From Macrostomum lignano (taxonomy: Eukaryota), in assembly GCA_002269645.1 (NCBI GenBank), contig NIVC01001887.1, positions 124,001 to 188,000 on the forward strand: 64,000 nucleotides of DNA, read 5' to 3'. Each line of letters opens with the position of its first letter. Position 1 is the stretch's first letter. A program made the translations under genes and the position numbers. Under the pieces are notes generated by a model. That model was not told where the DNA came from. It saw only the letters and a program-made list of their open reading frames with translations, and made no database searches. Shown one piece after another: positions 5,825 to 64,000 of this stretch.

Positions 5825-5833
5825 TCCTCCCCG
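5825..5833 (-). other. Polypurine tract (GGGGAGGA) abutting the 3' LTR
   Basis: Purine run immediately 5' of the 3' LTR on the element strand. Confidence 0.75.
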
Positions 5834-10073: not shown

Positions 10074-10084
10074 TCTAGAATAAT

Positions 10085-10098
10085 TTGCTCTGCTACCA
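10085..10098 (-). other. Primer-binding site complementary to the 3' end of initiator tRNA-Met
   Basis: TGGTAGCAGAGCAA begins 2 nt after the 5' LTR; complements ...CUCUGCUACCA of metazoan tRNA-iMet. Confidence 0.88.
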
Positions 10099-10100
10099 GT

Positions 10101-10316
10101 TGTAGACTAAGGCAGAGAGATACAACTGAGAGTTGACGAAGCCTCTTGGCGTTTATTAGATCGATACGCAGGTTAAATACGATACAACGATTGTTACAAA
10201 ACTGGGTATAAAAGATAGAGACAGGGGTGGGTGAAAAGCACGTACATGCTGTACAATAGCAACCCCCACCCCGCTCTAGCGACTGGCGCATACAAGTACA
10301 CTTGCAACTCACTACA
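10101..10316 (-). repeat. 5' LTR (216 bp)
   Basis: Identical by eye to 5608-5823. Confidence 0.97.
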
Positions 10317-10818
<502 letters not shown>

Positions 10819-10824
10819 CAGTGC

Positions 10825-11763
10825 TTAGCGCAGAATCACGGCCAGTCTATCGGCCAGCTGGCCGCTCGAACTCCAGGCCACATCTGGCTGCGTGCTGTAC
10901 AGCAGTTTCGGTGGGGAGGTCACCTCGCCGGCCCAGCTGCAGATGTCAGTGGTCTCGAGCGCCAGCATGAGGCCGCGGTCATTCGGGCAGGTGTTGTACA
11001 GGTAGCTGATGAAGAAGCTGCGGTTATGAACAGTATCTCCGGGAATGCCGAAGAAGTTGAAGGTCCGGCTAGCGAGGTCGGAGACAGGCCAGCTGGCCTT
11101 CAGCCGGTCCCGAGAGAACCAGTTGGTCCTGTTCAGCTCGTGAGGCGACACCGCGAGGTCGAAGGTGACCTTTACGACAACAGAGTCGGCGACAGAGAGC
11201 TGGACGACGGCCTCCTTGAAGGTGAGCTTCGGCGCCACTGCGGGCAGCTGGTCGATGGTGCTGGCGCGGAACAGGTCGGGCAGGAGGCTGGCGGAGTTGG
11301 GCGCGCCCCGAACGGCGGACCCGTTGCTGCGGCTCGGCGAGTCGACCAGGTCGAACGACTTGACGCCGACGCCCGCTCGGATGCTCAGCGCGAGGAAGCC
11401 GCGCTCGGCGACGTCGCAGGACACGAGGCAGCGGCCCCCCGCCGAGGCCGAGACGGGGCAGGCGGCGAAGTCGCCGCAGTCGGTCGAACGACGCTCGCAG
11501 ACGTCGGAGGCGGCGTCCCACGTCACCGACTCGCGCGCCGCGGCTCCCATCGGCTGCGGCAGGTCCAGCCGGAAGCAGCCGCGGACGCCTTGGCTGCCGC
11601 TGGCGACTCGAACCGGCGGCTCGCAGGTCGAGGCGAACTGCGACTCCGTGAAGCAGCCGGGCTGTCCCGCGCCGGCGCCGGCGGCCAGCAACAGCCCCAG
11701 GAACGTCAGCAGAGGCGCCAACTTCAGGGGCGCGCTTACTCGGATCGCGAGCTGAGCAGCCAT
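10825..11763 (-). CDS. Intronless secreted protein, 312 aa: signal peptide, Cys-rich segment and a C-terminal domain of unknown function
   Basis: ATG-to-TAA ORF with host-like GC3 bias; hydrophobic N-terminus (LLTFLGLLLAAGAGAG); C-terminal WFS..RL..SW..DL...C.ND.G..C.W..LLYS..AD pattern. Confidence 0.85.
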   Translation of the reverse strand: MAAQLAIRVSAPLKLAPLLTFLGLLLAAGAGAGQPGCFTESQFASTCEPPVRVASGSQGVRGCFRLDLPQPMGAAARESVTWDAASDVCERRSTDCGDFAACPVSASAGGRCLVSCDVAERGFLALSIRAGVGVKSFDLVDSPSRSNGSAVRGAPNSASLLPDLFRASTIDQLPAVAPKLTFKEAVVQLSVADSVVVKVTFDLAVSPHELNRTNWFSRDRLKASWPVSDLASRTFNFFGIPGDTVHNRSFFISYLYNTCPNDRGLMLALETTDICSWAGEVTSPPKLLYSTQPDVAWSSSGQLADRLAVILR

Positions 11764-41011: not shown

Positions 41012-41467
41012 TTACACCAGGCCTATACTATAAGATTTCATGCTAAATTATTTTTTAAAAGGAGGTAAAGTAAAAATATGTTTTTTACACAATTCTTTTA
41101 AAAATATTGAGTGTTTAATTATACTGAGGCTAACTTGTGCATAATAAGCTATCAATATTTTTCAACATTTTCTTCTGGACATTTTGGTAGCTATTATAAG
41201 TTTGTTACTAATTAGACTGTAGATCTAATAAATTTCTAATATAATGGCCCATTTATTATTTATAAAACAGACAATATTTTCAAAAAACAGTTCCATTGTT
41301 GTTTGTGATTTTTGTGGCTTAGAAAATATAGTAAGTGGATAACACTGATAGCTGTAAAATATTCATTACAACTCTACACGTTGCGCTTCTGCTGTCTGAG
41401 TTGGATTTTCTTAGGTTCACCAAAGCGTGAATGCACAACTGTCTTCCCACGTCTGAATCATTGCAGA

Positions 41468-44400: not shown

Positions 44401-47400
44401 TTGGGTAGCTGTAGGCTCCTGCTGGGTAGCTGTAGGCTCTTGTTGGGTAGCTGAATGCTCTTGTTAGGCAGCTGTATAGGCTCTTGTTGCGTATCTGCCG
44501 GCTCTTGTTGGGCAGCTGTAGGCTCCTGCTGGGTAGCTGTAGGCTCTTGTTGGGTAGCTGAATGCTCTTGTTAGGCAGCTGTATAGGCTCTTGTTGCGTA
44601 TCTGCCGGCTCTTGTTGGGCAGCTGTAGGCTCCTGCTGGGTAGCTGTAGGCTCTTGTTGGGCAGCTGTAGGCTCCTGCTGGGTAGCTGTAGGCTCTTGTT
44701 GGGTAGCTGTAGGCTCCTGCTGGGTAGCTGTAGGCTCTTGTTGGGCAGCTGTAGGCTCTTGTTGGGTAGCTGAATGCTCTTGTTAGGCAGCTGTATAGGC
44801 TCTTGTTGCGTATCTGCCGGCTCTTGTTGGGCAGCTGTAGGCTCCTGCTGGGTAGCTGTAGGCTCTTGTTGGGCAGCTGTAGGCTCCTGCTGGGTAGCTG
44901 TAGGCTCTTGTTGGGTAGCTGTAGGCTCCTGCTGGGTAGCTGTAGGCTCTTGTTGGGCAGCTGTAGGCTCTTGTTGGGTAGCTGTAGGCTCTTGTTGGGC
45001 AGCTGTAGGCTCCTGCTGGGTAGCTGTAGGCTCTTGTTAGGTAGCTGTAGGCTCTTGTTGGGCAGCTGTAGGCTCCTGCTGGGTAGCTGTAGGCTCTTGT
45101 TGGGTAGCTGTAGGCTCCTGTTGGGCAGCTGTAGGCTCCTGCTGGGTAGCTGTAGGCTCTTGTTGGGTAGCTGTAGGCTCTTGTTGGGCAGCTGTAGGCT
45201 CCTGCTGGGTAGCTGTAGGCTCTTGTTGGGTAGCTGTAGGCTCTTGTTGGGTAGCTGTAGGCTCCTGCTGGGTAGCTGTAGGCTCTTGTTGGGTAGCTGT
45301 AGGCTCTTGTTGGGTAGCTGTAGGCTCCTGCTGGGTAGCTGTAGGCTCTTGTTGGGTAGCTGTAGGCTCTTGTTGGGCAGCTGTAGGCTCCTGCTGGGTA
45401 GCTGTAGGCTCTTGTTGGGTAGCTGTAGGCTCTTGTTGGGTAGCTGTAGGCTCCTGCTGGGTAGCTGTAGGCTCTTGTTGGGTAGCTGTAGGCTCTTGTT
45501 GGGTAGCTGTAGGCTCCTGCTGGGTAGCTGTAGGCTCTTGTTGGGTAGCCTAGGCTCTTGTTAAGTAGCTGTAGGCTCTTGTTGGGCAGCTGTAGGCTCT
45601 TGTTGGGTAGCCGTTTTTGTCTCTTTATGGTTAGCCATTGACTTTTACTGAACCAAAAACAACTGCCATTGGCTTAGGTCACTAAACCGATAATAACATA
45701 ATCACAGGCACAGTTTTGGGCCTATTCTAACAACCATTTTAAGCATTTCCCTTCCAATTGGTGTCATCTGTTGCTTTTCCCAGTCTAAAAATAGATATCT
45801 GCTTCAGTTCGCAACTTAGCTTTATCTTGCATTAACAATTCAACAAAATATTCATTGAACGCAAGGCAGAAAATTGTCAAAAGCGCTCAGTTCCAGCAAT
45901 GAGACTCAAGTCAGGATGGCCGAGTGGTCTAAGGCGCTGCGTTCAGGTCGCAGTCCTCTTCTGAGGGCGTGGGTTCGAATCCCACTTCTGACAAAAAATT
46001 TTTTACTTTTCGCAAATTAGTTCCGCATTCGAGTCCAATGGTGATTGTTGCTTGTTTTGATAATTTTAGGCATCAAGGCTTAAGTTCTTGTATATTACGT
46101 TTCTTACAGTACTATTAGTAGTGCGATCTATCAAAATCATTTTGCCTATCATTCCGCAGGTTCCACAGATGCACCCGCTGGCTGACGAGGCTGGCCGGGT
46201 CTGGGAGACTCCCCGCTGGCTACCCGGCCACCTGGAGGACGAGGAGCTCCGCATGTACATCCGCGCTGCCCGCTCCTTGGCTGCCTTCGCCGGCTTCTGC
46301 GACCTCGGCAGCGCCAGCGAGGGTCAGGCATCGGCCGGCACCGACCGGACAGCGCAGCGGGCCCTCGACGCACTTCACGACCTCGACTACGATGTCCGGC
46401 TGGCTCTCCGCGTGCTGGTACGCAACCCGCGACTCAACGGCGCCGGTGGCGGTGGCTTCGATGACGGCGACTGCGGCGCACCCTGGTCGCGCGAGTGCGT
46501 GCGCCGCTTTCAGAAGGGCGTCCGCCAGTACGGCAAAAACTTCTGCCGAATCCGGCGCGAACTCTTGCCAGAGCGCCGGGTCGGCCAGCTGGTGCACTTC
46601 TACTACCTGTGGAAGCGGTCGCCGGCTTGCCCGAACGGTGCCCGGTCGGCGGGGAGACGCGGCGGCGGTGGCGGCGCCGCATCGCCAGCCGCTCAGTTCG
46701 AGCCGCTCTGCCGCAACTGCGAGCAAATCCCGGCGGCCGGAGACGGCGACCCGCTCTGTGGCGAGTGCCGCCAGTTTTACCTCAAGTACGGCGAGGACCG
46801 GCCTTGCCACAGCTCCCGCGCCGGTGCCAGCGCAGATGACACCGACGGTGCCAACGAGGTGGCGTCGGTGAAAGCCGAAGCTACCGCTGCCGCCAGCATC
46901 GCCCATACTGCAGAGGCAGGCGCTGGCGCAGACGCTGTAGACGGCGACGCCGAAGGTGAGCGCGAGGACTCGGACAGCTCAAGCAGCGAGGACAGCAGCA
47001 GCTCCAGTGACAACTCGATCGATGAAGCGATCGCTGCCTCCGATGACCCCCCGAGCACTTCGCGCACAGCAAGCAGGCGCGATTCCCCCTCTCCGCCGCC
47101 GCCTTCGTCCACAACGCCTCCTTCACCGACGCCCTCCCGTCCAGCTCCTGTCTGCAGTCCGGCCCCTCTGCCCTGCCGTCTGGCCGGCGCCCACGTCAGC
47201 AGCGGCGGCCGCTGCCTTCAGCGAGTCTGGCTACGCAGCGGAGGCCGCAACTCCTGCGCCCGCACCGACCTGCATTTTCAGGCGCCCGCGACGGCCAGCC
47301 GCGCCGACTCCAGCCGTCAGCCCACCTGTCGACCTGTCGCTGCCGCTCCCGCCTCTTCGTCGGTCCCGGCTGCATCGCCCTGGCCAACTTCAGCGCCGCT

Positions 47401-47926
47401 TTCTCGACCTCGTTCGACAGTAGGAGCCGCGGCGGAGGAGCAGCAGCGGAAGATGCTCGCCGCCGCCTGGCAGGCGGAGCAAGCGCGCCTGGCCGAGTTC
47501 GCCTACCTGCAGTCCGCCAGCTGCAGCAGCGCTAGGCAGCCGCCGCCTCCGCACTTTGGCCCGCTGATGCAGCCGCCACTATCGCCACACGAGTTCGCCG
47601 GCCACAGCGCCGCCTTTGGCCCGGATCCGTTTGCCGCCTTCGGCCGCCCCGCGATGCCGCTGCAGCCTCCGCCATCGCCGCACCATCACCAGCGACAGCA
47701 GCTGATGCAGCATCATCTGTTCAGAGCGCCGCAGCCCCCGCCTTCGTCGGAATTCGCACCCCTCTTTGCAGCTGCCGCGGCGGCTGCTTCCCAGCAGCAT
47801 CATCAGCAACAGCAGCTTCACCAGAGTATTGCTCAGCGTCATCAACATCAGGTGATGTGCGACCCCCGCTGCCTTCCATTCGACCCCGCTCTGCTGGCCT
47901 TCCCGCCGCTGCCGTCGCCTCGCTGA
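41468..47926 (+). CDS. RERE: RERE/atrophin-family corepressor (BAH, ELM2, SANT, GATA-like finger, atrophin-like tail), about 805 aa. Exons 41467-41797, 43661-43981, 46160-47926
   Basis: BAH YRLGDCCY...RELFLSE; ELM2 EIRVGPSFQAELP...YIRAARSLAAF; SANT FQKGVRQYGKNF...HFYYLWK; RNSCARTDLHF; phase-0 joins. Confidence 0.9.
41925..43515. repeat. About 23-bp intronic minisatellite, heterogeneous 5' half and homogeneous 3' half (AAACCAATCCTAGAACCAGCCTC)n
   Basis: Seen directly. Confidence 0.95.
44046..45612. repeat. 21-bp intronic minisatellite (GGGTAGCTGTAGGCTCTTGTT)n
   Basis: 7-aa period AVGSCWV. Confidence 0.96.
45910..45993 (+). tRNA. trnL-CAG: tRNA-Leu(CAG), inside RERE intron 2
   Basis: GTCAGGA.../...TTCTGAC acceptor stem, A box TGGCCGAGTGG, anticodon loop TTCAGGT, long variable arm, B box GGTTCGAATCC, T-run terminator near 45999. 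Confidence 0.96.
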
Positions 47927-48944
47927 GTTGCTGGGCGCAGCCTCTTCTAGCAGATGTTTGCGTGTCTTCAAAATCACAGCGCATTTCAGGTCTTAAGTGA
48001 GCAACAGAGCTCAATAGTGCTCGTCCTGTAGCTAGCAATGTTCACTAGCTTACCTTGTAAAGCAGAGCTCATTGCTTCTGATTTTTACCTTTAGATTGGT
48101 ATCAAGAATCTTGATAATCTCTTATTATACATTAACTTCTCATTTTTATGCTATCGAATTTCCCTTGAACTGATGCTACTTGCGACTGTTGCCTCCGTGA
48201 CTCCCGTGTGCCTTCAGCGACTTGGCTCTCCCCCAGCTCACTTAGCTTGCTTGCATTCAGTGGCACTTGATGTCTTGACTCAACTGACTACGCAGGGACC
48301 CGATACCTTTAGATTTGTTACTCTCAGTGTATTTTTTTCATTTTAGCTTTTGGCTTTTATGTGACTTTAGAACTGAAATCAGGTGTCCCATGATAGTTTT
48401 TCATTTTCATTTCCTCATCTAGTGCAGATGTTTACCCAATTCTATTTAGATTTTTCCTTTTGGTTCAACAGACGTGGTTATTTGTTTTTGTTTAGTGATA
48501 ATAGATTAGTCTCATTGACCCATTCTCGAGACACTAATTACGGTTAATCACTGGTTTTAATCACCTTTTATAGACTGATATTGGAATAATGATAGCTTTT
48601 ATTGAAAAAATCAGAGACTGCTTGAAAAATACAATTTTCAATGTCAACCCATCTCGGGTAATGGTGTGTACACTGGACCTGTAATTATTACACATAAATA
48701 ATGGAAAATCAGAATCTAATTCGATTCAAAAGTACACCCGTAAGCTTACGCCTGCTTAAGATCCTTAAGTTTGTTATGCACCAAACAAATGTTCGGGCAT
48801 ATAACTATTGTATTACACACCTGGAACTGCAACAGCGCATCTTCACTCTAAATGTATCTAAGGAATATAAAAGTGAAAATCAACATAAATGAACTTCTTT
48901 CGACGCAAAGAGTAAAGAGTAAAGAGCAAAGAGCAAAGAGTACA

Positions 48945-49470
48945 CTGATCAGGTTAGTGCCTTCACTTAGAACACCTTGAGCAAATGGCCCGCACCACTA
49001 TGGGAAATGGGAAATCTTTCATCAAGTTGGTGCGGCCCATTGTCTCCAGCATTACCAAGCGAGGGGCACTTACGCACGGTGCTCTCGATTTCAGCAGCGA
49101 TATGTAATTTGTTGAGCTTGGGTGGTAAGACCGGATGCCTGAGTCCTCGTTGTAGACATTGTAGACGTTGCTGTTGTGGGTTCGGGGCATGACTCTTAGT
49201 CTGCTTTTCGAGCCATACGCTCGTAGTCTACCCAATTTTGCCTCCAGTCTCGTCTTGTCTTGTTTGACTTGGACTTTCACAGCTCGTGAGACGAGTTGAG
49301 ATAGCACGGCGTAGGTCAGGAAGCTCAACTTTTCTTTGAGTTTTAGCTTGAAGCCTCGAATTTGCATTAGTAGTTTTCTTTCTTTCTGGGAATTGAGCTT
49401 GAGTTGTCTTCGGATGAGTTTCTCAGCGAGTCTGGCTGCGCAGCGGAGGCCGCAACTCCTTCGCTCGCAC
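48945..49470 (-). mobile_element. Fragment of the N-terminal ORF region of a Penelope-like element; CpG-retaining, host-type composition
   Basis: Basic helical ORF (RLAEKLIRRQL...KTRLEAKLGRL) followed in another frame by GLRHPVLPPKLNKLHIAAEIE, resembling the PLE pre-RT region; next to an HHR core. Family call from memory. Confidence 0.5.
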
Positions 49471-49547
49471 TGTTATAATTACAGTAAACGTTTGTTCTTT
49501 TTATCTCATAAAAGTTGTTGTGTGTGAGTAAAAAAATACATCAGACC

Positions 49548-49580
49548 CTGAAGATGGTCCTTGTTGGACCGAAACGCGTC
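49548..49580 (+). ncRNA. Minimal type-I hammerhead ribozyme-like core; stem I not formed
   Basis: CTGAAGA-T-GGTCC(TTGTT)GGACC-GAA-ACGCGT-C: conserved core, stem II, palindromic stem III and GUC triplet. Confidence 0.6.
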
Positions 49581-51422
49581 GAAAGAAGTTAATTTAACTT
49601 ATGTTGATTTTCAATTTATATTCCTTTGCGTTCTAAAGCGTGCTACCTTACCTCAAACGTAACTAAACATCAGATTATTGGAATGATCATGTGAAGTAAC
49701 TATATCGTATTCAAAAGCTTTCGGTTCCGATTTATAGTTCTCGATATAGTTCAAAAGTTTTCGATTTATAGTTCTTTCGGCAGCCATGTGTTTTACATGT
49801 ATGCACAGTTTCTCGTAATTTTTATTGTAAATTATTGACTACTACGAGCGTATCAGTTAGAAACGCATGAACTGCACGGAATAACTTGCATATGTACTTT
49901 TACTGCCATCAAAATTACATAATTACAGAAAAAATATACGAGGCAGTTTTCTCTGACGTTCAGGGTCAAATACGGTCAAGCTCTTAGTTTCAGCGAATTT
50001 CCGAGTGTATACGGTACATTAAAGTTACAGTACATATACACGTTACAGTGCAGTCATCACATATATACATTCCAATAGAAAATTTCAGAGGTCGATGAAA
50101 CGGAGAAGCGCTGTGAAACCGGGGCCGGTTGCAGAGGCAATCTTTACTGACAAAATTAGCTATTAAAAAAACTAGAATAAAATGAGAAATTAAGTTGTGT
50201 TGTAGTGTGCAGCTACTTAGAAAATTTTATTATTTGATGGAAATTATAAAACGTTTTGTTTTTTGCTTAATTTATATGCACCAGAAAAAAATGAAATTTG
50301 TCTTCTTCTATTAATTCCTTCCTGAGCACTGCCAGCACTGGCGCAGCCAAGAATTTGTGGAGGGGAGCGGAGTTAAGGACCACTGTAGTATCACTACTGT
50401 TGCTCACACACTCCTTTGGACGGACTCTGGAAGGTAGAGACCACAGATATTATCTATTTTCGACCCAAAGTAGGCCGGAGGGGGTACGTGGCTTTGTATT
50501 TAGGCTAAAATGTGCTTGGCTCCCTTTCATTTTTATTAGGTTTCCCTGAGCGTCCCTGTGCGTCAATAGTGCGTCCCTGAGCACTAGGAAGGTTGAGGAA
50601 AATCTGATCGCAATAAAGAGAATATAGAACACAGTTTAGGCCGTAAAAAATAAACTAGTTAAAACAAATAGTATCAACAATATATATCTTGTTACATCTT
50701 CACGCAAATAGCTTGACGTGTCTGTGTTTATTTTAAATCCTAAAATATAAATGTAACTAACGTACAAAAATATGTCTTTGCAAATGAACTTTTTTATGTG
50801 TAACGGATAAGGTCAACTTTGTATTTTTCTATAAATTGCATGCGCTCACTCACTGCTTTATAGCGTATCTTTATTATAGATGTTATTCCATTTGAATCTA
50901 TGTAAAGCACAGTGTAGTTTTTGAAGGTAATTGAAGGTAATAATATTACCTGACTTTAAACCTTAACTTTAAGCTGCATCTTGATTAAACAGAAAGTTGT
51001 GATTTTGTTTATGATTATTGCTTGTGACTCTGAAAATTATTAAAAATAAAAATTTTTTTTAAATATCCTATTTTCAAGACTAGTTATTAATTTTATTGTA
51101 TTGTATAATATGATCATAGGCCTATGACTTGATATTTTAGCCTAATTTATTGATTTCGATGATCATAGGCCTGTAGCCAACTTAGGCCTATAATTTTTTA
51201 GGCTCTATGCTATGCCTATGGGCTATAGTAATTTTATAAGGCCAACCAAACTATTTTTACTATTTTTAAACTTTCTCAAAACTTAAGTACATTTTTTATT
51301 ATACCTTGTAGATCAAAACTTAAAAGTAGATTATTATACTCTTGAAAACAATTTTTATTTCAATTCAAGAGTTTCTTTTTAGGTCCTCAAATATTAAACC
51401 TATATACTATACTATACTATAC

Positions 51423-51717
51423 TATGGCAATGGCTAGAGTTCTGGAACTGGAACCCATTTTCTAAGGGCTATGAATCTGGCAGTGGTATTCCACTAGTGC
51501 CATTTATGGGTATAATATAGCAGAAACATTTTACTTTTAACAGGTGGTTGATATTGAGATTTTGTTCAAGATGAGATCAAAATGAAATGATAAGATTCAA
51601 AACAAGACACTTCTAATGTTCAAAGACTTCATTAGTAGATAACTGCCTATAGAAGACTGCCGGATCCATAGCCATTAGTAAATGGGTTCTGGTGCCGGAA
51701 CTCTAGCCATTACCCTA
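51423..51717. mobile_element. MITE-like element, about 295 bp, with 62-bp imperfect TIRs
   Basis: 51423-51484 is the reverse complement of 51656-51717 with about 10 mismatches, several at CCGG; TA-rich flanks. Confidence 0.75.
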
Positions 51718-52497
51718 TACTATGGTATATAGACTAGTCTAAAGGCTCTATTACAAATAACATTACATTTTGCAAATGAATAACATAAGTGCATATAATA
51801 TAAAAAAATAGGATAGGAACAAGTGACTCATTCATAAGTATGAACATAGACCCTATATTAGAAATGTATATCTATTATAGTTGTAGTTAAAAATGTGAAA
51901 TAAAAATCTAAATTATCTTTCAATAAGGCATATGAGACAACCTTTTATAGGAGCATATATGACTATGATATATAATAATCTATTTATTAAATGACACAAA
52001 ATAAGGATACCAAATTTTGCTATACTTAATAAATGAGTTAAAAAACTAGATACTTTTTAAAAAGCATCTGTGATATGCTTAAAGTCTAAGTAGATAATAT
52101 AAGAATATTTATATTAATTTTATATATAATACAAAGTTATATATATACAATTTTTCTAAATATTTCTAATATAATACATTTGCAAAGGCATACTTTTAAA
52201 GTGTATGCCTTTAGATATAAAAGTTATGTTTTGGATTTTGACAGATTTTTGGATTAACAAAAAAATTCTATATAGCATTAGTTAATTATAAGTTGTATAT
52301 AGCTTTTGCATTTAATCCTTAGTTTAGATATATAGATGACAGATAGATAGATGATAGATTATTTTGATATATATATATATAGTCTATAATATAATGTATA
52401 TAATAATGTACCCATATTTAGTTTCCTGTTTTTTTAACTTATACATTTCAATGCACAATAGCACAAGAAAAGCTAAACTGCTCCTCCAACCTCAGGG

Positions 52498-55400
52498 ATG
52501 AACCCCCAGCCTCCGCCAATGCAGCCAAGATCGATAAGCGGATGGCCGCTGCCCCTGGGCTGCAACAGTGCAGAGGCGCTGCCACCTTTCCTGACTGGCG
52601 CGGTGCCACCACTGCCGTTTCCCATCCCGTTCAGCCACCTGCCCGGCATGCAGGCCGATCCACGCCTGCGCGTTGCTGGCCTCGCCAGGCAGGACAGCTT
52701 TGACGAGGTGGCCAGCGGCGGCAGCAACGCCAGCGCTGGTGTTGGCGGCGGTGGGGTCGGTGGCGGCCCCAGCGGAAGCAGCGCCGGAGGCGGAGCCGCC
52801 ATGTCGCACAAGCAGGTCCGCCAGCGCCTCCAGGAGGTCATTCTCAACAAGCAGCGCAACAGGGAGCTGTCAAACTCGCCCCCGGAGTGGGCCTCGCCGC
52901 AGAGCAGCTTTGAGTCGGCCGGGTCTCCGCCCACCCGCTGGCAGGTAGGGCGCTGCCGGTTATGTGCGACCTTCGCTAGCCAGCTGGATAGGGTGTGAAG
53001 GCTGCTCCAGAGAGACGGTGCATATATAGGATCAGATGGAACCGGGGGAGATCGAGAATCCCTTATCCAGATAGACAGAGACAGATTCGCACGAAAATAT
53101 GAAATGAAAATTCCCAACCAGGTGCAGCACACATTCCCACTGCCGGCCGGATCCCCATTGAAGGACTTCCCGCTGCGCAAGACCAGCTCCGAGCCCAACC
53201 TGAAAGTCCGCACGGCCGCCATGCGCCACCAGCGGGGCGCCGCGCTGCTCGACCGGACGGCCAAGCGGCGGCTGCGCTCGCTTCTTGAGCGGTCAGGCAT
53301 CGGCAACGCCGCCGCCCCAGCAGCAGCGACAGCCACCGCCGTCTCCTCAGCTGCCAGCGGTGCCTCCGGCCAGTCGGTGGAGTGCCACGCCTCGCTGCCC
53401 AACTTGGCTGGCCTGAAAGCTCGCCTGAGCATTGCCGCCGCCGCCGCCGCCGCTGCAGCAGCCGGCGCTGGCGGTCCCGCCGCCCTCTGCCGGCCCGCGG
53501 AGTCGATGCCCCGCCGGCGGCCCGGCAAGCAGCTCAGCCGGACCCGGTCGGCGCCGCTGCCGATGCCCGTCTCGGCGGTGAAGGCGCAGCTGCGGCAGAA
53601 GGTGCTGCACCGGTCCGGCTCCGCCGACGATGCGCCCGCGGGCCCGCAGCCGCCTGGCTCCGCCGTGCCTCCGCCCTGCTGCGCCAGTCACGGAGCTGCT
53701 CCTCAGATCCGCGAGGAGGCCGAAGAGGATGGCCTGGCGATGCTGGAGCGGGCCTGCAGCACCCCGCTGATGCAGCTGCCGTCTCCCATTGCCGAGGAGC
53801 GGCCGAACGACCTGCTGCCCGCTGCCAGTGGCACCGCGTTGGCCTACGATGAAGGCATGCTGGCGCACCGCTGCCTGTGTAACCAGAGCCGCCTGCACCC
53901 GGAGAACCCGCTCCGCCTGGAGCTGGTCTGGCAGCGGCTGGTCGAGACGGGACTGGCAGCTCGCTGCATGCGCTGTCGGTAAGTGCGCGGCGGTTGGGGA
54001 TCCGGGATGTTGGGTGGTTGAGAATTGAGGATCCGGGATGTTGGGTGGTTGAAAATTGAAGATCTGGGAGTTGGGACAAGTTGATCTACAGTAAAATCAA
54101 TAATATCGTTCCTTTGCCCCCAAAGGTCCCGCAAGGCGACCATCGAGGAGCTGCGCCTGTGCCACGGCGAGATGTACAGCGTGCTGCACGCCACACAGCC
54201 GTCGCAGCGTACCCGCCTGGACCCGGCCCTGCTGCTGAACTTCAAGTTCGCCCAGCTGCCCTGCGGCGGATTTGGCGTTGACACGGACACGGTGTGGATC
54301 GAGGGCGGCACCGCCCAGGCCTGCCGGTTGGCCGTCGGCGTCCTGCTGGAGCTCTGCCAGCGCATCGTGCTTGGCGACTGCCGCAACGGCTTGGCGCTCA
54401 TCCGGCCGCCCGGCCACCACGCCGAGGACTCGCAGGCCATGGGCTTCTGCTACTTCAACTCCGTGGCCATCGCCGCCCGCAGTCTGGTCCGCTCCGGCCA
54501 GGCCGCCCGTGTCTGCATTGTGGACTGGGACGTCCACCACGGCAACGGCACGCAGTCAGTGTTCTACTCGGACCCCAGCGTGCTGTACATCTCGCTGCAC
54601 CGCTACGACGGCGGCGCCTTCTTCCCCGGCTCCGGCGCCGTGGAGGAGATCGGCGAGGGTCCCGGGCTGGGGACCAACATCAACATCGCCTGGTCTGGAC
54701 AGGTGAGACTCCTCCAGAGTCCATGCTGGGTTATCTATAGTGGCGAGCCCCTCTAATTAGTCTGCTGTATTGGCCAGCCCCTCTAATTAGCCTGCTGTTG
54801 AATTGGCTGTATTGGCCAGCCCCTCTAATTAGCCTGCTGTTGAATTGGCTGTATTGGCCAGCCCCTCTAATTAGCCTGCTGTTGAGTTGGCTGTATTGGC
54901 CAGCCCCTCTAATTAGCCTGCTGTTGAATTGGCTGTATTGGCCAGCCCCTCTAATTAGCCTGCTGTTGAGTTGGCTGTATTGGCCAGCCCCTCTAATTAG
55001 CCTGCTGTTGAGTTGGCTATATTGGCCAGCCTCGCTAATTAGCCTGCTGTTGAGTTGGCTGTATTGGCCAGCCCCTCTAATTAGCCTGCTGTTGAGTTGG
55101 CTATATTGGCCAGCCTCGCTAATTAGCCTGCTGTTGAGTTGGCTGTATTGGCCAGCCCCTCTAATTTCCATGCTATTGAAGCTAGTGTAATAAATCTCCC
55201 TTATCTTCCATCAAGCTTCCCAGTCTCACTTGACCCCTCCCCATCCCGCAGGTGATGGGTGACGCTGAGTACCTTGCCGCATTCCGCGCCATCGTGCTGC
55301 CAGTCGTTGCCCAGTTCTCCCCGACGCTGCTGCTCGTCTCCGCCGGCTTCGACGCCGCCCGCGGGCACCCGTCGAACCTCGGCGGCTACTGCCTGTCACC

Positions 55401-55752
55401 CGAGGGCTTCGCCCAGCTCACCGCCCAGCTTATCCGCGCCACCCCCGGCGGCCGCATCGCGCTGGCACTGGAGGGCGGCTACGACCTGGCCACGCTGCCC
55501 GACTGTGTGGAGGCCTGCCTCCGGGTTCTACTCGGCGAGCCCGAGCCCGCCCTGTCCGACGCCGAGAGGCACCGGCGGCCCAACCCGGATGCGGTGGATC
55601 TCATCCACCAGGTGGTCCGCCAGCAGCGCCAGTTCTGGGGCGACTGCCTCGGCCTGCCAAGCGCCGACACCATCGATATGAGCGTCGAGGAGGCGACGCG
55701 GCGGCTGCAGGCGCTGACTGTGTGCGGTGGTCCCTCGGAGTGCGGGGTGTAG
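52498..55752 (+). CDS. HDAC4: Class IIa histone deacetylase (HDAC4/5/7/9 co-ortholog), 793 aa. Exons 52496-52944, 53122-53978, 54126-54702, 55252-55752
   Basis: MEF2-binding motif KQVRQRLQEVILNK; 14-3-3 sites LRKTSSEP and RTRSAP; structural Zn ligands HRCLC...H and QLPCGG; RPPGHH, DWDVHHGNGTQ, AGFDA, LEGGY; phase-compatible joins. Confidence 0.95.
54745..55165. repeat. 42-bp intronic minisatellite
   Basis: 14-aa period GAGQYSQLNSRLIR on the minus strand. Confidence 0.93.
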
Positions 55753-55869
55753 AGGGGGGCGGTCCCTCTGAGTGCGGGATGTTCACTGTATTCTAAAAGT
55801 GACTATTTTAAGTCGCTGTCACTCCAGTCTGGGACTGATTGCCATATTAGATATGGCAGGCAATAATTC

Positions 55870-58800
55870 CTATTTTTAACTGCTAAAAATAGCCCTTATT
55901 GAACTCGCATCGGATCCGGGCGGCAGAAAATTTCATCCCATTTCTGTACCCTGAATTCAGTCGAGTGGATCTTATTTAAACAGAATTGTTGCTTTTTAAG
56001 TCTAAATTTAGCAGCAATAAACTCGAGGCCGTCATGAGTTCCAGTTTAGCGCAGCCCATTGTCCCAACTGCTCCCCCATTGTGCGTCCTTAGCTAGCTAG
56101 TCTGCGGCAGCGCGCCCTGGTGCCGCTATTGCTGTTAGTGATTCTGTGAAACTGTTCTAAATTCGGCACCCCAAGCGCCCGTTTAAATTTCCTGTTGTGT
56201 GGAGGCCTGCGGCGCCTTCGCATCTGGTTATTTATGTGTCTGTCTGCTTATATATAGATTTGTGTTCGTCAGCGCAGATGCCACAGCACATATTGTGTAC
56301 AGAATAGTTGCGCAGTCTGTGTGCATTCTCTCTTGTTTTGTGCTCAGCTTTTGACCCCTCTAATTTGCCAGTCAGGCTTTGCCCTCAGCCCGTTCACCGC
56401 TTGTGTTTGTGAATGTCCAATCAGCTGCTTTTTTGTGTCTGGCGCCCGGGCCGCGTAGCTGTAGCCCTCCTTGTACAGCCCCTCCCCTCATCCCTGACTG
56501 TCCGTGCACGCAAGCCAAGGCGCCACAACTGCTCTCTCTCTGCTACACTTCTCTTGCACGCTTTCGCGGTCCGCCACGTTTTTTGATTGATTAATTGATT
56601 GATCGAGAGTATATTTGAACTGACTTTTTGACTATAAGGATTTATTGTTGTGCCGGAGGTAGACACTGCACTTTAATACACTGTCAGCCAGTTCGCGTGA
56701 TCCCTTTTGTGTCCGAGCTGTTAAAAATTTTACACCCGTCTTCTCGGCGTTAATCTTCGCTTTCATTTTTTATCCAACAATCGGGACTGGCTTGCTTCTG
56801 AATCGACTAAATTTAGACTGGCCTCCACTGTGCTGACCCGGCCGCTCGTCTGTCTGCCCTCCCGTCCCACTCGCAGGCCGGCTAAATTTAGAGCCCGCGG
56901 CCTGCCTTATCCCCCAGCCAGCGTCTTCCGTAGCCGCCCTCCCTGTTCGTCTCCGAGGCCTCCTGCTCCCTGCTCTGCCCTAATCCCATCTTCCCGCTCT
57001 GTCCCTCCCGCTCCCATCCCCGGGCCGTGCGGACTTGACCAAGGAAGAGAAGCGCGGGCTGGCGAGGCCGGCAGCGGCAAAGGCGGCAGGGTAAGAGGGG
57101 ACAAGTCGGTGTTGACCGCCCTGCGCCGCTCCCACTCTCGCTGGTCCGGCAGGGATTTCTAATTTTAGCTGGCTTGCGACTGGTCGTTAATCCCACCTCT
57201 CTCTCTCTCCAGTTCCTCAGAAATCCCACTTCCTAGACACTAAACGGACGGAGGGGGCTCACTTCGCCTCTGCCTGCCTCCCTCCCTCCCTGTATTGGCC
57301 CAGCTGCGCCGTGCGCCTCATCGAGGGAGGGGTCCAGATTCCTTACTGACTGGCTGCAATCCCCCTTGCCGCCGTTGATCCCCGACTCTGTAGCAGTTTC
57401 TGAACAGAAGCAGCAAGGCAAGACGCGGCTGCCACCCTGCCAGGTCTGCTTCCCCGTCTACCCCTAGCAAAGAGCCATTCATCCGTCAGTAGCCGCGCAG
57501 CGCTCCGCCTGCAATTCAATGCCTGCTGCACTTCCTACCTTGCGTGTTCAGCTTCCCTAATAAACAGCCAACAATGCTAATGCACTATTCATGCCACTCC
57601 CCCCGCTAGTTTCTCAAACTTGCCGGCTGCTGCTTGAAGCTGAAGCGAAAGTATGAAGCTGACGCGCCTGGACTGCGGGGAGGCACCGTGGCAACTTGGC
57701 CGGTGCCGGCCCGACGGCCCTCACTCATCCATTGGAATGCTGCTGTTCCGCCGGACAGCTAATTGCCCTCCGCAAGCCCTCTGCAGTGCGTCATGTCTGC
57801 CTGTCATACCCGGCTTACAGCATCATCATTATTCCTACGTTTAGCAACGCTTCTTTTCTTCTTCAACTACCCGCTACTTCTGCTGCTGCGGAACGGAGCC
57901 AGTGCAAAAGTTCTGCAATCCACCGGCAGGGCCGGACTCTTGATTGTCCGCGTGGAAGAGCTGAAATAAGAGACGGGCAAACAGGGGTGCGAGGAAGACA
58001 AAAGGCAGCGGAGCAAAGCAACAAAACCCCAGGCCGGTGTCGCTTCACAACCGCGCCTCTCGGCTGCCACTGCGGCGCTCAACTTGGGCGCCCGTCCTCC
58101 CGACTGCTGGGCGGAAGTCGATCCCCCATGGCTTGTTCTCCCGCCCAAGTTTTCCCCGCATTCCGTGCAGAGGGACGGCTGGGGAGCCTCGGTTTGACGT
58201 CACGGGATTTTGCCGCCGGCTACTCGAGCGCCTTTCCCAGTGTTGATGGGGTGCAGGCACAGCCTGCGGCTCACTTTCACCTGAGCGCACCCCCTGCTGA
58301 GAGAGGCGAACTTAGAGAGGGGATTAATCCCTCCTCGGAGCGGGTTAGGAGAGTCAAAATTCTGGCAGCTCGAGTCAGCGAGGCTTTTTATTAATCCACC
58401 CCCCACCTCTCCGCCATTCACCTGGCAGCGCCTTGGGCCTCAGCAGGTCTGGCGGGCCCGACTGCTCACGTCAACAGCTCGGGCCGCGATGGAACGGATC
58501 GCGTGAGCAGCTCGGATTCTGGCTAAATTTAGCCAGCCGCATCAATTTCTGCTCGCAGCTTCCCGGTCCAGTTCGTGCTCCCTCTTTTGCAAAAAAATCC
58601 CCATAGTGGGAAAAGGGATTTGCTCGCCTGTGGCGGCTTAGCCGAGCTGCCGAGGGCGTGAAATCTTTGTCCGCCCTATTTTTAGCAGCAGCCGGGCCCC
58701 TGTTTGACTTCCCCGGTCGAACTTCCTGCCTCCCCACCCCGCCGTGATTAAAGAAACTTTTGCGCCCTCGCCGCACTTTGCCCCGTTTTCCACTGTTGCT

Positions 58801-59110
58801 GTTCGGGTTGCCGAATCAATTTAGTAATTAAAAAGAATTTGCCTGCGCGGCAGGAATGCAAATTCTCGAGCACTCAGGCGGACAAAGCGCGGGGGGAGGC
58901 AGGCGGTGTTGCGGGCCCGGTGGCTGCTCGGCTTCGCCCACAGGCTCTGCCCGAGCTGGGCTTCCTTCAATACCTGCCGTCCCTGCTGCCCTGTTTACCC
59001 GCGGCCAGCCATCCGGTTGCCATTTTGGGAATTCGCTCGCCGCCTTGGCAGCTGGCAGATCGGGGCTCCATCCGGATCTGGCCCCTGCTTGCCGAGGCCG
59101 CTATAAATAG
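55870..59110. promoter_or_regulatory. Cluster of MEF2 consensus sites (8 strict CTA(A/T)4TAG plus 2 YTA(A/T)4TAR); the last overlaps a TATA box
   Basis: Sites start at 55870, 55883, 56002, 56248, 56807, 56882, 57159, 58523, 58676 and 59101. Confidence 0.7.
56016..56021 (+). terminator. Candidate poly(A) signal of the HDAC gene
   Basis: AATAAA about 265 nt after the stop codon. Confidence 0.5.
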
Positions 59111-59371
59111 ACCCGCTTCCCCTTTCACTCAAAGCACGTTTCCCGGCCTGTTTTTTCTAAATCCAACTCCCCTTTTATCCTGATAGTGCTTCCTGTCTTC
59201 TTTGTCTCTCCCGAATCCTTTTCAGGCTTTGCAGTTCTGCTTCCTTTAATGCCAGCAGCCCGGATTTGTCGCCTCCTTCATCCTCAGATTGCAGCTTCTC
59301 AGCCCAGTCATAGCCTTTTACTCAAATTTCTAGATTAATTAGCCTTCTCAAATCCTCAGATCCTTTCTCAT

Positions 59372-60275
59372 CTCCCCAGATTCTCATCTCCCCAGATTCT
59401 CATCTCCTCAGATTCTCATCTCCCCAGATTCTCATCTCCCCAGATTCTTATCTCCCCAGATTCTCATCTCCCCAGATTCTCATCTCCCCAGATTCTCATC
59501 TCCCCAGATTCTCATCTCCCCAGATTCTCATCTCCCCAGATTCTCATCTCCCCAGATTCTCATCTCCCCAGATTCTCATCTCCCCAGATTCTCATCTCCC
59601 CAGATTCTCATCTCCCCAGATTCTCATCTCCCCAGATTCTCATCTCCCCAGATTCTCATCTCCCCAGATTCTTATCTCCCCAGATTCTCATCTCCCCAGA
59701 TTCTCATCTCCCCAGATTCTCATCTCCCCAGATTCTCATCTCCCCAGATTCTCATCTCCCCAGATTCTCATCTCCCCAGATTCTCATCTCCCCAGATTCT
59801 CATCTCCCCAGATTCTCATCTCCCCAGATTCTCATCTCCCCAGATTCTCATCTCCCCAGATTCTCATCTCCCCAGATTCTCATCTCCCCAGATTCTCATC
59901 TCCCCAGATTCTCATCTCCCCAGATTCTCATCTCCCCAGATTCTCATCTCCCCAGATTCTCATCTCCCCAGATTCTCATCTCCCCAGATTCTCATCTCCC
60001 CAGATTCTCATCTCCCCAGATTCTCATCTCCCCAGATTCTCATCTCCCCAGATTCTCATCTCCCCAGATTCTCATCTCCCCAGATTCTCATCTCCCCAGA
60101 TTCTCATCTCCCCAGATTCTCATCTCCCCAGATTCTCATCTCCCCAGATTCTCATCTCCCCAGATTCTCATCTCCCCAGATTCTCATCTCCCCAGATTCT
60201 CATCTCCCCAGATTCTCATCTCCCCAGATTCTCATCTCCCCAGATTCTCATCTCCCCAGATTCTCATCTCCCCAG
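59372..60275. repeat. Very homogeneous 16-bp satellite (AGATTCTCATCTCCCC)n
   Basis: Seen directly. Confidence 0.97.
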
Positions 60276-63200
60276 ACTCCCTCTCTCATCTCTCCAGATC
60301 CCCTCTCTCATCTCCCCAGATCCCCTCTCTCATCTCTCCAGATCCCCTCTCTCATCACCCCAGACTCCCTCTCTCATCTCTCCAGATTCCCTCTCTCATC
60401 TCTCCAGATCCCCTCTCTCATCTCCCCAGATCCCCTCTGTCATCTCTCTAGATCCCCTCTCTCATCTCTCCAGATCCCCTCTCTCATCACCCCAGACTCC
60501 CTCTCTCATCTCTCCAGATCCCCTCTCTCATCTCCCCAGATCCCCTCTCTCATCTCTCCAGATCCCCTCTCTCATCTCCCCAGATCCCCTCTCTCATCTC
60601 CCCAGATCCCCTCTCTTATCTCTCCAGATCCCCTCTCTCATCTCCCCAGATCCCCTCTCTCATCACCCCAGATCCCCTCTCTCATCACCCCAGATCCCCT
60701 CTCTCATCACCCCAGATCCCCTCTCTCATCTCCCCAGATCCCCTCTCTCATCTCCCCAGATCCTCTCTCTCATCTCCCCAGATCCCCTCTCTCATCACCC
60801 CAGATCCCCTCTCTCATCACCCCAGATCCCCTCTCTCATCTCCCCAGATCCCCTCTCTCATCTCTCCAGATCCCCTCTCTCATCTCTCCAGATCCCCTCT
60901 CTCATCTCCCCAGATCCCCTCTCTCATCACCCCAGATCCCCTCTCTCATCACCCCAGATCCCCTCTCTCATCTCTCCAGATCCCCTCTCTCATCTCCCCA
61001 GATCCCCTCTCTCATCACCCCAGACTCCCTCTCTCATCTCTCCAGATCCCCTCTCTCATCTCTCCAGATCCCCTCTCTCATCACCCCAGATCCCCTCTCT
61101 CATCTCCCCAGATCCCCTCTCTCATCACCCCAGACCCCCTCTCTCATCTCCCCAGATCCCCTCTCTCATCTCCCCAGATCCCCTCTCTCATCACCCCAGA
61201 TCCCCTCTCTCATCTCTCCAGATCCCCTCTCTCATCTCCCCAGATCCCCTCTCTCATCACCCCAGATCCCCTCTCTCATCTCCCCAGATCCCCTCTCTCA
61301 TCTCTCCAGATCCCCTCTCTCATCTCCCCAGATCCCCTCTCTCATCTCCCCAGATCCCCTCTCTTATCTCTCCAGATCCCCTCTCTCATCTCCCCAGATC
61401 CCCTCTCTCATCACCCCAGATCCCCTCTCTCATCTCCCCAGATCCCCTCTCTCATCTCCCCAGATCCCCTCTCTTATCTCTCCAGATCCCCTCTCTCATC
61501 TCCCCAGATCCCCTCTCATCACCCCAGATCCCCTCTCTCATCACCCCAGATCCCCTCTCTCATCTCCCCAGATCCCCTCTCTCATCTCCCCAGATCCCTC
61601 TCTCATCACCCCAGACCCCCCTCTAATCTCCCCAGACCCCCTCTCTCATCACCCCAGACCCCCCTCTAATCTCCCCAGATCCCCTCTCTCATCACCCCAG
61701 ATCCCCTCTCTCATCTCCCCAGATCCCCTCTCTCATCACCCCAGATCCCCTCTCTCATCTCCCCAGATCCCCTCTCTCATCACCCCAGATCCCCTCTCTC
61801 ATCTCTCCAGATCCCCTCTCTCATCTCCCCAGATCCCCTCTCTCATCACCCCAGATCCCCTCTCTCATCTCCCCAGATCCCCTCTCTCATCTCCCCAGAT
61901 CCCCTCTCTCATCTCTCCAGATCCCCTCTCTCATCTCCCCAGATCCCCTCTCTCATCACCCCAGATCCCCTCTCTCATCTCCCCAGATCCCCTCTCTCAT
62001 CTCTCCAGATCCCCTCTCTCATCTCTCCAGATCCCCTCTCTCATCTCCCCAGATCCCCTCTCTCATCACCCCAGATCCCCTCTCTCATCTCCCCAGATCC
62101 CCTCTCTCATCACCCCAGATCCCCTCTCTCATCTCTCCAGATCCCCTCTCTCATCTCCCCAGATCCCCTCTCTCATCACCCCAGATCCCCTCTCTCATCT
62201 CTCCAGATCCCCTCTCTCATCTCTCCAGATCCCCTCTCTCATCACCCCAGATCCCCTCTCTCATCTCCCCAGATCCCCTCTCTCATCACCCCAGACCCCC
62301 TCTCTCATCTCCCAGATCCCCTCTCTCATCTCCCCAGATCCCCTCTCTCATCACCCCAGATCCCCTCTCTCATCTCTCCAGATCCCCTCTCTCATCTCCC
62401 CAGATCCCCTCTCTCATCACCCCAGATCCCCTCTCTCATCTCCCCAGATCCCCTCTCTCATCTCTCCAGATCCCCTCTCTCATCTCCCCAGATCCCCTCT
62501 CTCATCTCCCCAGATCCCCTCTCTTATCTCTCCAGATCCCCTCTCTCATCTCCCCAGATCCCCTCTCTCATCACCCCAGATCCCCTCTCTCATCTCCCCA
62601 GATCCCCTCTCTCATCTCCCCAGATCCCCTCTCTTATCTCTCCAGATCCCCTCTCTCATCTCCCTAGATCCCCTCTCATCACCCCAGATCCCCTCTCTCA
62701 TCACCCCAGATCCCCTCTCTCATCTCCCCAGATCCCCTCTCTCATCTCCCCAGATCCCTCTCTCATCACCCCAGACCCCCTCTAATCTCCCCAGACCCCC
62801 TCTCTCATCACCCCAGACCCCCTCTAATCTCCCCAGATCCCCTCTCTCATCACCCCAGATCCCCTCTCTCATCTCCCCAGATCCCCTCTCTCATCACCCC
62901 AGATCCCCTCTCTCATCTCCCCAGATCCCCTCTCTCATCACCTTAGATCCCCTCTCTCATCTCTCCAGATCCCCTCTCTCATCTCCCCAGATCCCCTCTC
63001 TCATCACCCCAGATCCCCTCTCTCATCTCCCCAGATCCCCTCTCTCATCTCCCCAGATCCCCTCTCTCATCTCTCCAGATCCCCTCTCTCATCTCCCCAG
63101 ATCCCTTCTCTCATCTCCCCAGATCCCCTCTCTTATCTCTCCAGATCCCCTCTCTCATCTCCCCAGATCCCCTCTCTCATCACCCCAGATCCCCTCTCTC

Positions 63201-64000
63201 ATCTCCCCAGACCCCCTCTCTCATCTCCCCAGATCCCCTCTCTTATCTCTCCAGATCCCCTCTCTCATCTCCCCAGATCCCCTCTCATCACCCCAGATCC
63301 CCTCTCTCATCACCCCAGATCCCCTCTCTCATCTCCCCAGATCCCCTCTCTCATCTCCCCAGATCCCTCTCTCATTACCCCAGACCCCCCTCTAATCTCC
63401 CCAGACCCCCTCTCTCATCTCCCCAGATCCCCTCTCTTATCTCTCCAGATCCCCTCTCTCATCTCCCCAGATCCCCACTCATCACCCCAGATCCCCTCTC
63501 TCATCACCCCAGATCCCCTCTCTCATCTCCCCAGATCCCCTCTCTCATCTCCCCAGATCCCTCTCTCATCACCCCAGACCCCCTCTAATCTCCCCAGACC
63601 CCCTCTCTCATCACCCCAGACCCCCTCTAATCTCCCCAGATCCCCTCTCTCATCACCCCAGATCCCCTCTCTCATCACCCCAGATCCCCTCTCTCATCTC
63701 CCCAGATCCCCTCTCTCATCTCCCCAGATCCCTCTCTCATCACCCCAGACCCCCCTCTAATCTCCCCAGACCCCCTCTCTCATCACCCCAGACCCCCCTC
63801 TAATCTCCCCAGATCCCCTCTCTCATCACCCCAGATCCCCTCTCTCATCTCCCCAGATCCCCTCTCTCATCACCCCAGATCCCCTCTCTCATCTCTCCAG
63901 ATCCCCTCTCTCATCTCCCCAGATCCCCTCTCTCATCTCCCCAGATCCCCTCTCTCATCTCCCCAGATCCCCTCTCTCATCTCCCCAGATCCCCTCTCTC
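60276..64000. repeat. 22-bp satellite (AGATCCCCTCTCTCATCTCCCC)n with higher-order structure, runs off the window end
   Basis: Seen directly; variant units recur at a 1160-bp offset. Confidence 0.97.

Follow-up and report, generated by a model that had tools for sequence, protein, structure and literature searches.

Why does a flatworm carry a dense run of perfect MEF2-type binding sites directly behind the gene for a class IIa histone deacetylase (HDAC), the kind of protein that silences MEF2, and which gene do these sites serve? The question is posed by positions 55753–59364 of a 64-kb window of Macrostomum lignano DNA (assembly GCA_002269645.1, contig NIVC01001887.1, where the stretch occupies 179,753–183,364); "the window" refers to the whole of these 64 kb. 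The unit analysed spans the 3.6 kb between the HDAC stop codon and a minisatellite that bounds it on the right. Taken as sequence, it belongs to a known kind of element, the homotypic binding-site cluster. Its motif content makes it very probably a MEF2-responsive cis-regulatory region. A more specific reading, in which it acts as a MEF2-responsive 3′ feedback enhancer of the HDAC gene, is plausible and is given a little less than an even chance.

Organisation of the site cluster

Strict sites were defined as CTAWWWWTAG and relaxed sites as YTAW4TAR. The window contains ten strict sites, eight of them inside the stretch and two outside it (32732 and 45785). A pattern scan placed these eight, together with the relaxed sites at 55870 and 56248, at the coordinates given in a preliminary description of this DNA, whose statement that only two strict sites lie elsewhere was also borne out. 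The 18-bp perfect palindrome reported around one of the sites is exact (Table 1). Every one of the ten sites obeys the MEF2 rule of an invariant TA...TA, Y/R ends, and a W4 centre. To our knowledge, no other factor has YTA(W)4TAR specificity.

The sites form three groups, namely A (55803–56011, four sites including a one-mismatch site), B (56248–57168), and C (58523–59110), and a 1.35-kb gap without sites separates B from C. The perfect palindrome CTAAATTTAG makes up four of the eight strict sites, and the asymmetric sites are present in both orientations. A longer flank is common to some sites, such as GGCTAAATTTAG at 56880 and 58521. The similarity among sites consists of a 10–14-nt motif core and ends 2–6 nt beyond it. 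Position −1 is G or T in six of the eight strict sites, and position +1 is A or C in all eight. This flank preference resembles what we take to be the JASPAR-type MEF2 logo, which is unconfirmed and is given little weight.

The words themselves agree with published MEF2 preferences. SELEX-seq found CTAAAAATAG to be the best 10-mer of MEF2B and central A-tracts without a TpA step to be favoured, and fully palindromic sites tighten the MEF2B contacts (PMC7470950). Centres without a TpA step (AAAAA, AAATTT, AATTTT, and TTTTT) occur in seven of the eight strict sites of M. lignano. SmMef2 from Schistosoma binds CTAWWWWTAG in electrophoretic mobility shift assays, with CTATTTTTAG and CTAAAAATAG among the bound sites and a palindromic variant bound best (PMC3250504). 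In a flatworm survey (PMC3250504), no candidate Mef2 target had more than one or two strict sites in the 5 kb upstream of it, and eight strict sites in 3.3 kb are therefore unusual.

Enrichment over background

Markov models of order 0 to 3 were fitted to 55753–59364 itself, which has the base composition A.18, C.31, G.24, and T.26. The resulting GC content of 55.5% corrects an earlier figure of about 50%. The strict sites expected in the stretch number 0.025 at order 0, 0.024 at order 1, 0.060 at order 2, and 0.145 at order 3, and an earlier expectation of about 0.05 was thus of the right order (0.02–0.15). The probability of at least eight strict sites lies between 3e-18 and 4e-12 under these models.

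All ten TAW4TA octamers inside the stretch are YTAW4TAR and eight of the ten are strict, compared with 16/64 and 2/64 elsewhere in the window (Fisher test, p = 7e-6 for YTAW4TAR and 1.3e-7 for strict sites). In an unbiased k-mer scan, AAATTTAG/CTAAATTT was the top word (8 vs 0.31 expected, p = 1.8e-9). It was the sole word to survive multiple testing, with about 6e-5 after correction for 32,896 8-mer words. None of 100 whole-window shuffles matched the observed site count. The density of strict sites is about 40-fold that of some 92 kb of other M. lignano DNA, in which five strict sites occur.

No conclusion is drawn from the possible partner motifs. E-boxes are the usual MEF2 partners in muscle enhancers; they are not enriched in the stretch (9 vs ~13 expected), and the CAGCTG form occurs three times against about one expected. 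TAATCC(C), with 4–5 copies, and CAGCTCGG, with 5 copies, are nominally enriched and fail multiple-test correction, and the same holds for TAATCCC in the spacer (4 vs 0.6 expected, not significant after multiple testing). A palindrome, GGATTAATCC, is located at 58321–58330, and further TAATCC(C) words of the K50 homeodomain (Otx/Pitx) type are located at 56981, 57188, and 58392.

A single-copy, non-coding stretch

No tandem array was found within 55753–59364. BLAST gave no match between the stretch and the rest of the window, and only small palindromes when the stretch was compared with itself. A Pfam search of the 8 open reading frames (ORFs) of at least 80 aa in the stretch gave no match. Rfam gave none in the stretch, either at the gathering threshold or at E<=5, and no miR-1/133-type RNA was present. 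Because tandem-array, BLAST, Pfam, Rfam, and transposon matches are all absent, the stretch is unique non-coding DNA within the window and the other M. lignano DNA compared. The preliminary description had likewise called it non-repetitive. A multi-copy repeat carrying the motif was not found, and the sole other copy detected is a syntenic duplicate of the locus, with no further copies in the window or at the paralogue locus.

An origin from a transposon or a long terminal repeat (LTR) was considered for the stretch and rejected. It has no terminal or long inverted repeats, no similarity to the gypsy LTRs of the window, and no transposon domains.

The upstream class IIa HDAC gene

The gene that precedes the cluster, BOX15_Mlig014955g1 (Mlig014955.g1), lies on the + strand from about 52.5 kb (52498) to 55752 and has GT-AG introns. 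A near full-length model of the HDAC and the M. lignano protein are 99% identical, and the locus of that protein's cluster mate (L047) shows 100% identity to 55000–64000 of the window. Among single-domain PDB structures, HDAC4 gives the catalytic domain its best match (400 bits). BLASTP aligned VRQRLQEVILNKQR of the M. lignano protein to VKMRLQEFVLNKKK, the MEF2-binding motif of a salmon HDAC4-like protein. The MEF2 contact residues of human HDAC4 are listed in PMC10954479, and its hydrophobic contacts V171, L175, F178, and V179 correspond to V, L, V, and I in M. lignano. The 14-3-3 motifs RKTSSEP and RTRSAPLP follow, ordered as they are in the vertebrate protein. The catalytic domain, the MEF2-binding helix, and the two 14-3-3 sites together mark the upstream gene as a genuine class IIa HDAC, as had been proposed at the outset. 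A literature search for the HDAC gene identifiers found nothing.

The catalytic tyrosine is retained in this protein and in its M. lignano paralogue, and the vertebrate class IIa protein compared has histidine. The flatworm class IIa HDAC could thus have full deacetylase activity. If the AATAAA at 56016 is used as the poly(A) signal, sub-cluster A, which follows the stop codon, would probably lie in the HDAC 3′ untranslated region (3′UTR).

Several other features of this gene and its end were observed. A 42-bp minisatellite with about 9.6 copies lies in an HDAC intron (54741–55166), and the second genomic copy (L045 12245–12450) has about 5. Each 42-bp unit carries CCCCTCTAATTAGCC, whose core is the palindrome TAATTA of homeodomain type; with one mismatch it would count as a MEF2 site, and it lacks the obligatory TA at positions 2–3. 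A 25-nt direct duplication spans the HDAC stop codon (55726–55782), with GGTGGTCCCTCGGAGTGCGGGGTGT and GGCGGTCCCTCTGAGTGCGGGATGT 88% identical. Just past the stop, the second-copy alignment has 19 extra nt, a possible alignment-end artefact. Two adjoining palindromes are present at 55841–55901 in the probable 3′UTR, namely the near-CArG TGCCATATTAGATATGGCA and the 18-nt inverted repeat of sites 55870 and 55883. These palindromes could form RNA hairpins.

Table 1. Coordinates of the sites and other features of the M. lignano locus (window positions).
Feature	Position	Strand	Remarks
MEF2-binding helix codons VRQRLQEVILNK	52816–52851	+	BLASTP to VKMRLQEFVLNKKK of salmon HDAC4-like protein
First 14-3-3/CaMK-type phospho-site motif codons DFPLRKTSSEPNL	53164–53202	+	DFPLRKT same in salmon protein
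Second 14-3-3 site motif codons LSRTRSAPLP	53533–53562	+	Aligned to salmon LGRTQSAPLP
Catalytic Tyr codons LEGGYDL	55468–55488	+	Tyr kept as in arthropod HDAC4; His in vertebrate class IIa
HDAC stop codon TAG, end of annotated gene	55750–55752	+	
One-mismatch MEF2-like site CTATTTTAAG	55803–55812		Sub-cluster A; same in second copy
Relaxed MEF2 site CTATTTTTAA	55870–55879		Mirror image of site 55883; within 18-nt inverted repeat 55861–55901
Strict MEF2 site CTAAAAATAG	55883–55892		Sub-cluster A; pattern match
Strict palindromic MEF2 site CTAAATTTAG	56002–56011		Sub-cluster A; pattern match
AATAAA, candidate HDAC poly(A) signal	56016–56021	+	264 nt past stop; putative use
Relaxed MEF2 site TTATATATAG	56248–56257		Sub-cluster B
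Strict MEF2 site CTAAATTTAG	56807–56816		Sub-cluster B; +1 flank A/C between copies, core intact
Strict MEF2 site CTAAATTTAG	56882–56891		Sub-cluster B
Strict MEF2 site CTAATTTTAG	57159–57168		Sub-cluster B
Full palindromic CRE (cyclic-AMP response element) TGACGTCA	58195–58202		In B–C gap; TGATGTCA in second copy; single occurrence, weak evidence
18-bp perfect palindrome CTGGCTAAATTTAGCCAG	58519–58536		Encloses strict site 58523–58532, sub-cluster C; self-BLAST
Strict MEF2 site CTATTTTTAG	58676–58685		Sub-cluster C; −1 flank C/T between copies
Strict MEF2 site CTATAAATAG	59101–59110	+	Sub-cluster C; also sole TATAAA of the stretch; candidate composite MEF2/TATA
Initiator-like TCACTCA	59125–59131	+	25–29 bp past TATA; candidate rightward start
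Minisatellite, 16-mer TTCTCATCTCCCCAGA then 22-mer unit	59365–64000		Right boundary; extends 1.2 kb past the window, to the equivalent of 65229

The second genomic copy and the HDAC paralogue

A second copy of the whole locus is present on contig NIVC01000004.1 (L045; the stretch corresponds to 276,031–279,665), with the same order of a BAH/ELM2 gene, the HDAC, the spacer, and the minisatellite. The spacers of the two copies differ by 0.69% substitutions, with about 33 events in 3.6 kb. All eleven sites (8 strict, 2 relaxed, and 55803) are identical in the second copy. Substitutions are located next to sites at 56817 and 58675, and another abolishes the CRE at 58195. At this rate the 100 bp of sites should have received about 0.9 events, with P(0) of about 0.4, and the site identity between copies lacks power.

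M. lignano has another class IIa HDAC group, Mlig002081, which shares 59% identity and likewise possesses the MEF2 helix and the 14-3-3 sites. Its locus contains 3 strict sites in 28.7 kb (1.05 expected), one of them in the 10-kb 3′ flank. Because this 59%-identical HDAC has no cluster at its locus, the cluster is specific to a single class IIa HDAC paralogue out of two in M. lignano. A scan of metagenomes for relatives of the HDAC yielded distant animals and bacteria only, without a site cluster in any of them, and is uninformative.

The right flank

The element TATAAATA at 59102–59109 is the only TATAAA in the stretch and lies inside the last MEF2 site. Its spacing to the initiator-like sequence fits the core-promoter rule that places TATAAA 25–31 bp before the initiator. 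A promoter near 59130 had been suggested earlier; the TATA and initiator geometry at 59101–59131 fits this suggestion, and the gene it was to serve is missing from the annotation, as neither genomic copy has a called gene in the 10 kb that follow the HDAC. For the same reason, the HDAC is the nearest gene. Between 59131 and 59364 there is no ORF of note and no Pfam match. The array after the cluster measures 5.9 kb in one genomic copy and 2.9 kb in the other. Beyond the shorter array of the second copy, 3.4 kb are readable, and neither a strict site nor an ORF with a credible Pfam match occurs in them.

Which gene is the target?

In the nucleus, class IIa HDACs silence MEF2 modules, and their phosphorylation and export allow activation. 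If the cluster works in this way, MEF2 dimers would occupy the 8–11 YTA(W)4TAR sites. In resting cells, MEF2 would recruit the class IIa HDAC through the VRQRLQEVILNK helix and the region would be silenced. Once both 14-3-3 sites of the HDAC are phosphorylated, the HDAC would leave the nucleus and MEF2 would activate transcription. With the HDAC gene as the target, the region would be a 3′ enhancer that closes a negative-feedback loop, in which a rise in MEF2 activity raises the supply of its corepressor. With so many high-affinity sites, the response would be steep.

The feedback enhancer is favoured by position and by paralogue. No other called gene comes nearly as close as the HDAC, and group A lies inside or at the end of the HDAC transcript. 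The cluster also stands beside one class IIa HDAC paralogue only, and the induction of HDAC9 by MEF2 in vertebrates offers a precedent.

A number of findings weigh against this assignment. The 4.6 kb upstream of the HDAC (47927–52497) contain no strict site and four relaxed sites, compared with 2.6 expected. MEF2 sites in the HDAC's own promoter region, as in an HDAC9-type loop, were looked for in these 4.6 kb and are not enriched, and the region is therefore filed only as possibly HDAC9-loop-like. The HDAC annotation is N-terminally partial, so the position of the promoter is not fixed. The last site on the right doubles as a canonical TATA box, followed by an initiator-like sequence, and such a promoter would fire away from the HDAC. 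The intact sites in the second copy prove no constraint, because only about 0.9 changes were expected (P ~0.4). The single-copy status covers the window and about 92 kb of other M. lignano DNA.

A broader version of the feedback enhancer is speculative and rather doubtful. A 3′ super-cluster, either acquired or kept from the bilaterian ancestor, would put one HDAC paralogue under steep MEF2 control. The array may in turn recruit the HDAC back to silence the locus that encodes it, which would make it an oscillator or a set-point device.

The region may also be MEF2-driven and serve an unannotated rightward transcript that starts from the TATA at 59101 and the initiator-like sequence at 59125–59131, which is possible and is viewed with some doubt. 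Sub-cluster C with CTATAAATAG/TATA would be the promoter, and A and B would be upstream enhancers. The transcript would be a long non-coding RNA, or the non-coding first exon of a gene with the 5.9-kb minisatellite in an intron, and the HDAC neighbourhood would reflect coincidence or a shared domain. That the sole TATAAA in 3.6 kb coincides with the last MEF2 site, at the correct spacing from an initiator-like sequence, argues for such a promoter and against the HDAC as the target. A CAGCTG E-box at 59049, 52 bp upstream of the TATA element, points the same way. All of the sites lie upstream of 59131, with none in the 3.4 kb beyond the second-copy minisatellite. Minisatellites in the window are often intronic, for example at 54741–55166 in the HDAC and at 41927–45611 in the MTA-like gene. 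Composite MEF2/TATA elements reportedly occur in muscle promoters, such as that of Xenopus MyoDa described by Leibham in 1994. In contrast, both assembly copies lack a called gene over the 10 kb downstream, and 59131–59364 and the DNA past the array hold no noteworthy ORF or Pfam match. There is also no convincing splice donor before the array, and CTATAAATAG is plainly a common MEF2 site variant as well. The HDAC feedback enhancer and the rightward promoter are not mutually exclusive.

It is unlikely that the sites have no MEF2-dependent regulatory role and belong to another, possibly lineage-specific, binder of A/T palindromes (for example boundary or architectural), or to a mobile or duplicated sequence that is young, present in few copies, and carries the motif. 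In its favour, CTAAATTTAG accounts for half of the strict sites, and some share the longer flank GGCTAAATTTAG. Site constraint is unproven by the second copy, copy number was checked in the window and about 92 kb, and E-boxes are not enriched (9 vs ~13). However, the similarity between sites stops 2–6 nt from the core, and terminal repeats, transposon ORFs, and matches elsewhere in the roughly 92 kb are absent. The other copy is a syntenic duplicate only, and ten of ten sites obey the MEF2 rule.

An action in RNA, as AU-rich elements or hairpins of a long HDAC 3′UTR, is very improbable. Sub-cluster A does lie between the stop codon and the first AATAAA (56016), AUUUA is found within CTAAATTTAG, and sites 55870 and 55883 make an 18-nt inverted repeat. 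An RNA motif is strand-specific, yet A-rich and T-rich orientations both occur and half of the sites are palindromic. The invariant C...G ends are foreign to AU-rich elements, and seven sites lie past the first poly(A) signal. Because of the palindromes and the two orientations of the asymmetric sites, the pattern suggests recognition as double-stranded DNA rather than RNA.

Chance or compositional artefact, for which it can be said that one reader scanned many motifs, has a negligible probability and was rejected, since an order-3 model fitted to this very region still gives P<=4e-12, 0/100 whole-window shuffles reach the count, the 8-mer scan is significant after correction, and the Fisher test agrees.

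Comparison with known systems

HDAC9 loop: According to a passage of PMC3723562 that cites Haberland et al. (2007, Mol Cell Biol 27:518), vertebrate muscle has a loop in which HDAC9 is switched on by MEF2 and in turn represses it. To the extent of that passage, the negative loop is established background, as the preliminary description had assumed. The M. lignano locus is alike in that a class IIa HDAC gene is adjoined by MEF2 consensus sites and its product has the MEF2 helix and 14-3-3 sites. If the M. lignano sites drive the HDAC, an activator would likewise induce its own corepressor. The HDAC9 loop reportedly works through one MEF2 site in the promoter. In contrast, M. lignano has 8–11 sites within 3.4 kb past the stop codon and an unenriched upstream region, which again weighs against a loop of this type. 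It also differs in being a flatworm, in having the cluster at one of two class IIa paralogues, and in being a candidate from sequence alone.

Homotypic clusters: Clusters of sites for one transcription factor are known for Bicoid, Dorsal, and Su(H) in Drosophila, and a 3xMEF2 sensor transgene, "desMEF2", is a further example. The M. lignano stretch resembles them in that a single consensus recurs many times within a few kb of unique non-coding DNA, with both orientations, irregular spacing, and sub-clusters of a few hundred bp. Natural MEF2-dependent enhancers usually have one to three sites. The eight perfect sites of M. lignano, half of them the same palindromic word, are unusually dense by comparison.

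Epstein–Barr virus (EBV) Zp: In the EBV BZLF1 promoter, Zp, the word CTAAATTTAG occurs letter for letter, as primers in PMC5487075 and PMC6082571 show. According to PMC6082571, citing Liu 1997, Zp is bound by MEF2. Both Zp and the M. lignano stretch combine multiple MEF2 sites with a CRE-type element, which in M. lignano is TGACGTCA at 58195. In Zp, CTAAATTTAG is reportedly one of the MEF2 ("ZI") elements, where class II HDACs are recruited and hold a calcium-signal switch silent. Zp differs in being a compact viral promoter of about 220 bp, and the M. lignano CRE is not conserved in the second copy.

HDAC4 bridging: An HDAC4 dimer bridges two MEF2-bound DNA sites in a 2:4:2 HDAC4-MEF2A-DNA complex (PMC10954479). 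The M. lignano sites are within looping distance of each other, and the HDAC contact residues are hydrophobic (V, L, V, I). In contrast, bridging needs the glutamine-rich dimerisation domain, and the annotated M. lignano protein, which is N-terminally partial, shows no such domain. Pfam PF12203 is not reported for the annotated HDAC protein.

The wider locus

A BAH-ELM2(-SANT-GATA-like) gene of the MTA type (41312–47926, +) is located directly upstream of the HDAC (52498–55752, +) on the same strand. MTA-type proteins are corepressor subunits of the NuRD-complex type. The adjacency of the MTA-type gene and the HDAC is kept in the second genomic copy and is not found at the paralogous HDAC locus (L046). 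A tRNA-Leu(CAG) gene (45910–45993, +) lies inside the MTA-like gene between two minisatellite-filled introns. The out-of-cluster strict site at 45785 is 125 bp upstream of this tRNA gene.

A Ty3/gypsy LTR retrotransposon occupies about 5100–10830 (−), with uninterrupted gag (9264–10073) and pol (5980–9336). The pol domains comprise protease, reverse transcriptase, RNase H, and integrase. Each LTR region has a long (TAG)n/(AGT)n microsatellite (5119–5612 and 10316–10822). An exact look-up of the gag ORF and of P0121 gave no match. Tandem repeats represent 33% of the window (21.2 kb in 34 arrays), mostly 16–49-bp minisatellites in introns and between genes, and array lengths differ greatly between the two genomic copies.

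Significance

Because M. lignano is transgenic and amenable to RNA interference, and its cluster-less HDAC paralogue is a built-in control, the feedback idea is directly testable. A single-nucleus chromatin-accessibility and RNA (snATAC/RNA) multiome of M. lignano also exists (PMC11398382). A natural array of 8–11 high-affinity MEF2 sites would serve as a MEF2-activity sensor, or as a muscle or neuron enhancer, in flatworm transgenics. If the cluster is indeed a MEF2-driven HDAC enhancer, the feedback logic between MEF2 and class IIa HDACs known from vertebrate muscle would also be present in Spiralia. The loop would be wired unlike the HDAC9 promoter loop of vertebrates, with 8–11 sites on the 3′ side of one paralogue. 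In that case the feedback logic would either be ancient or have been rebuilt by convergence in another architecture.

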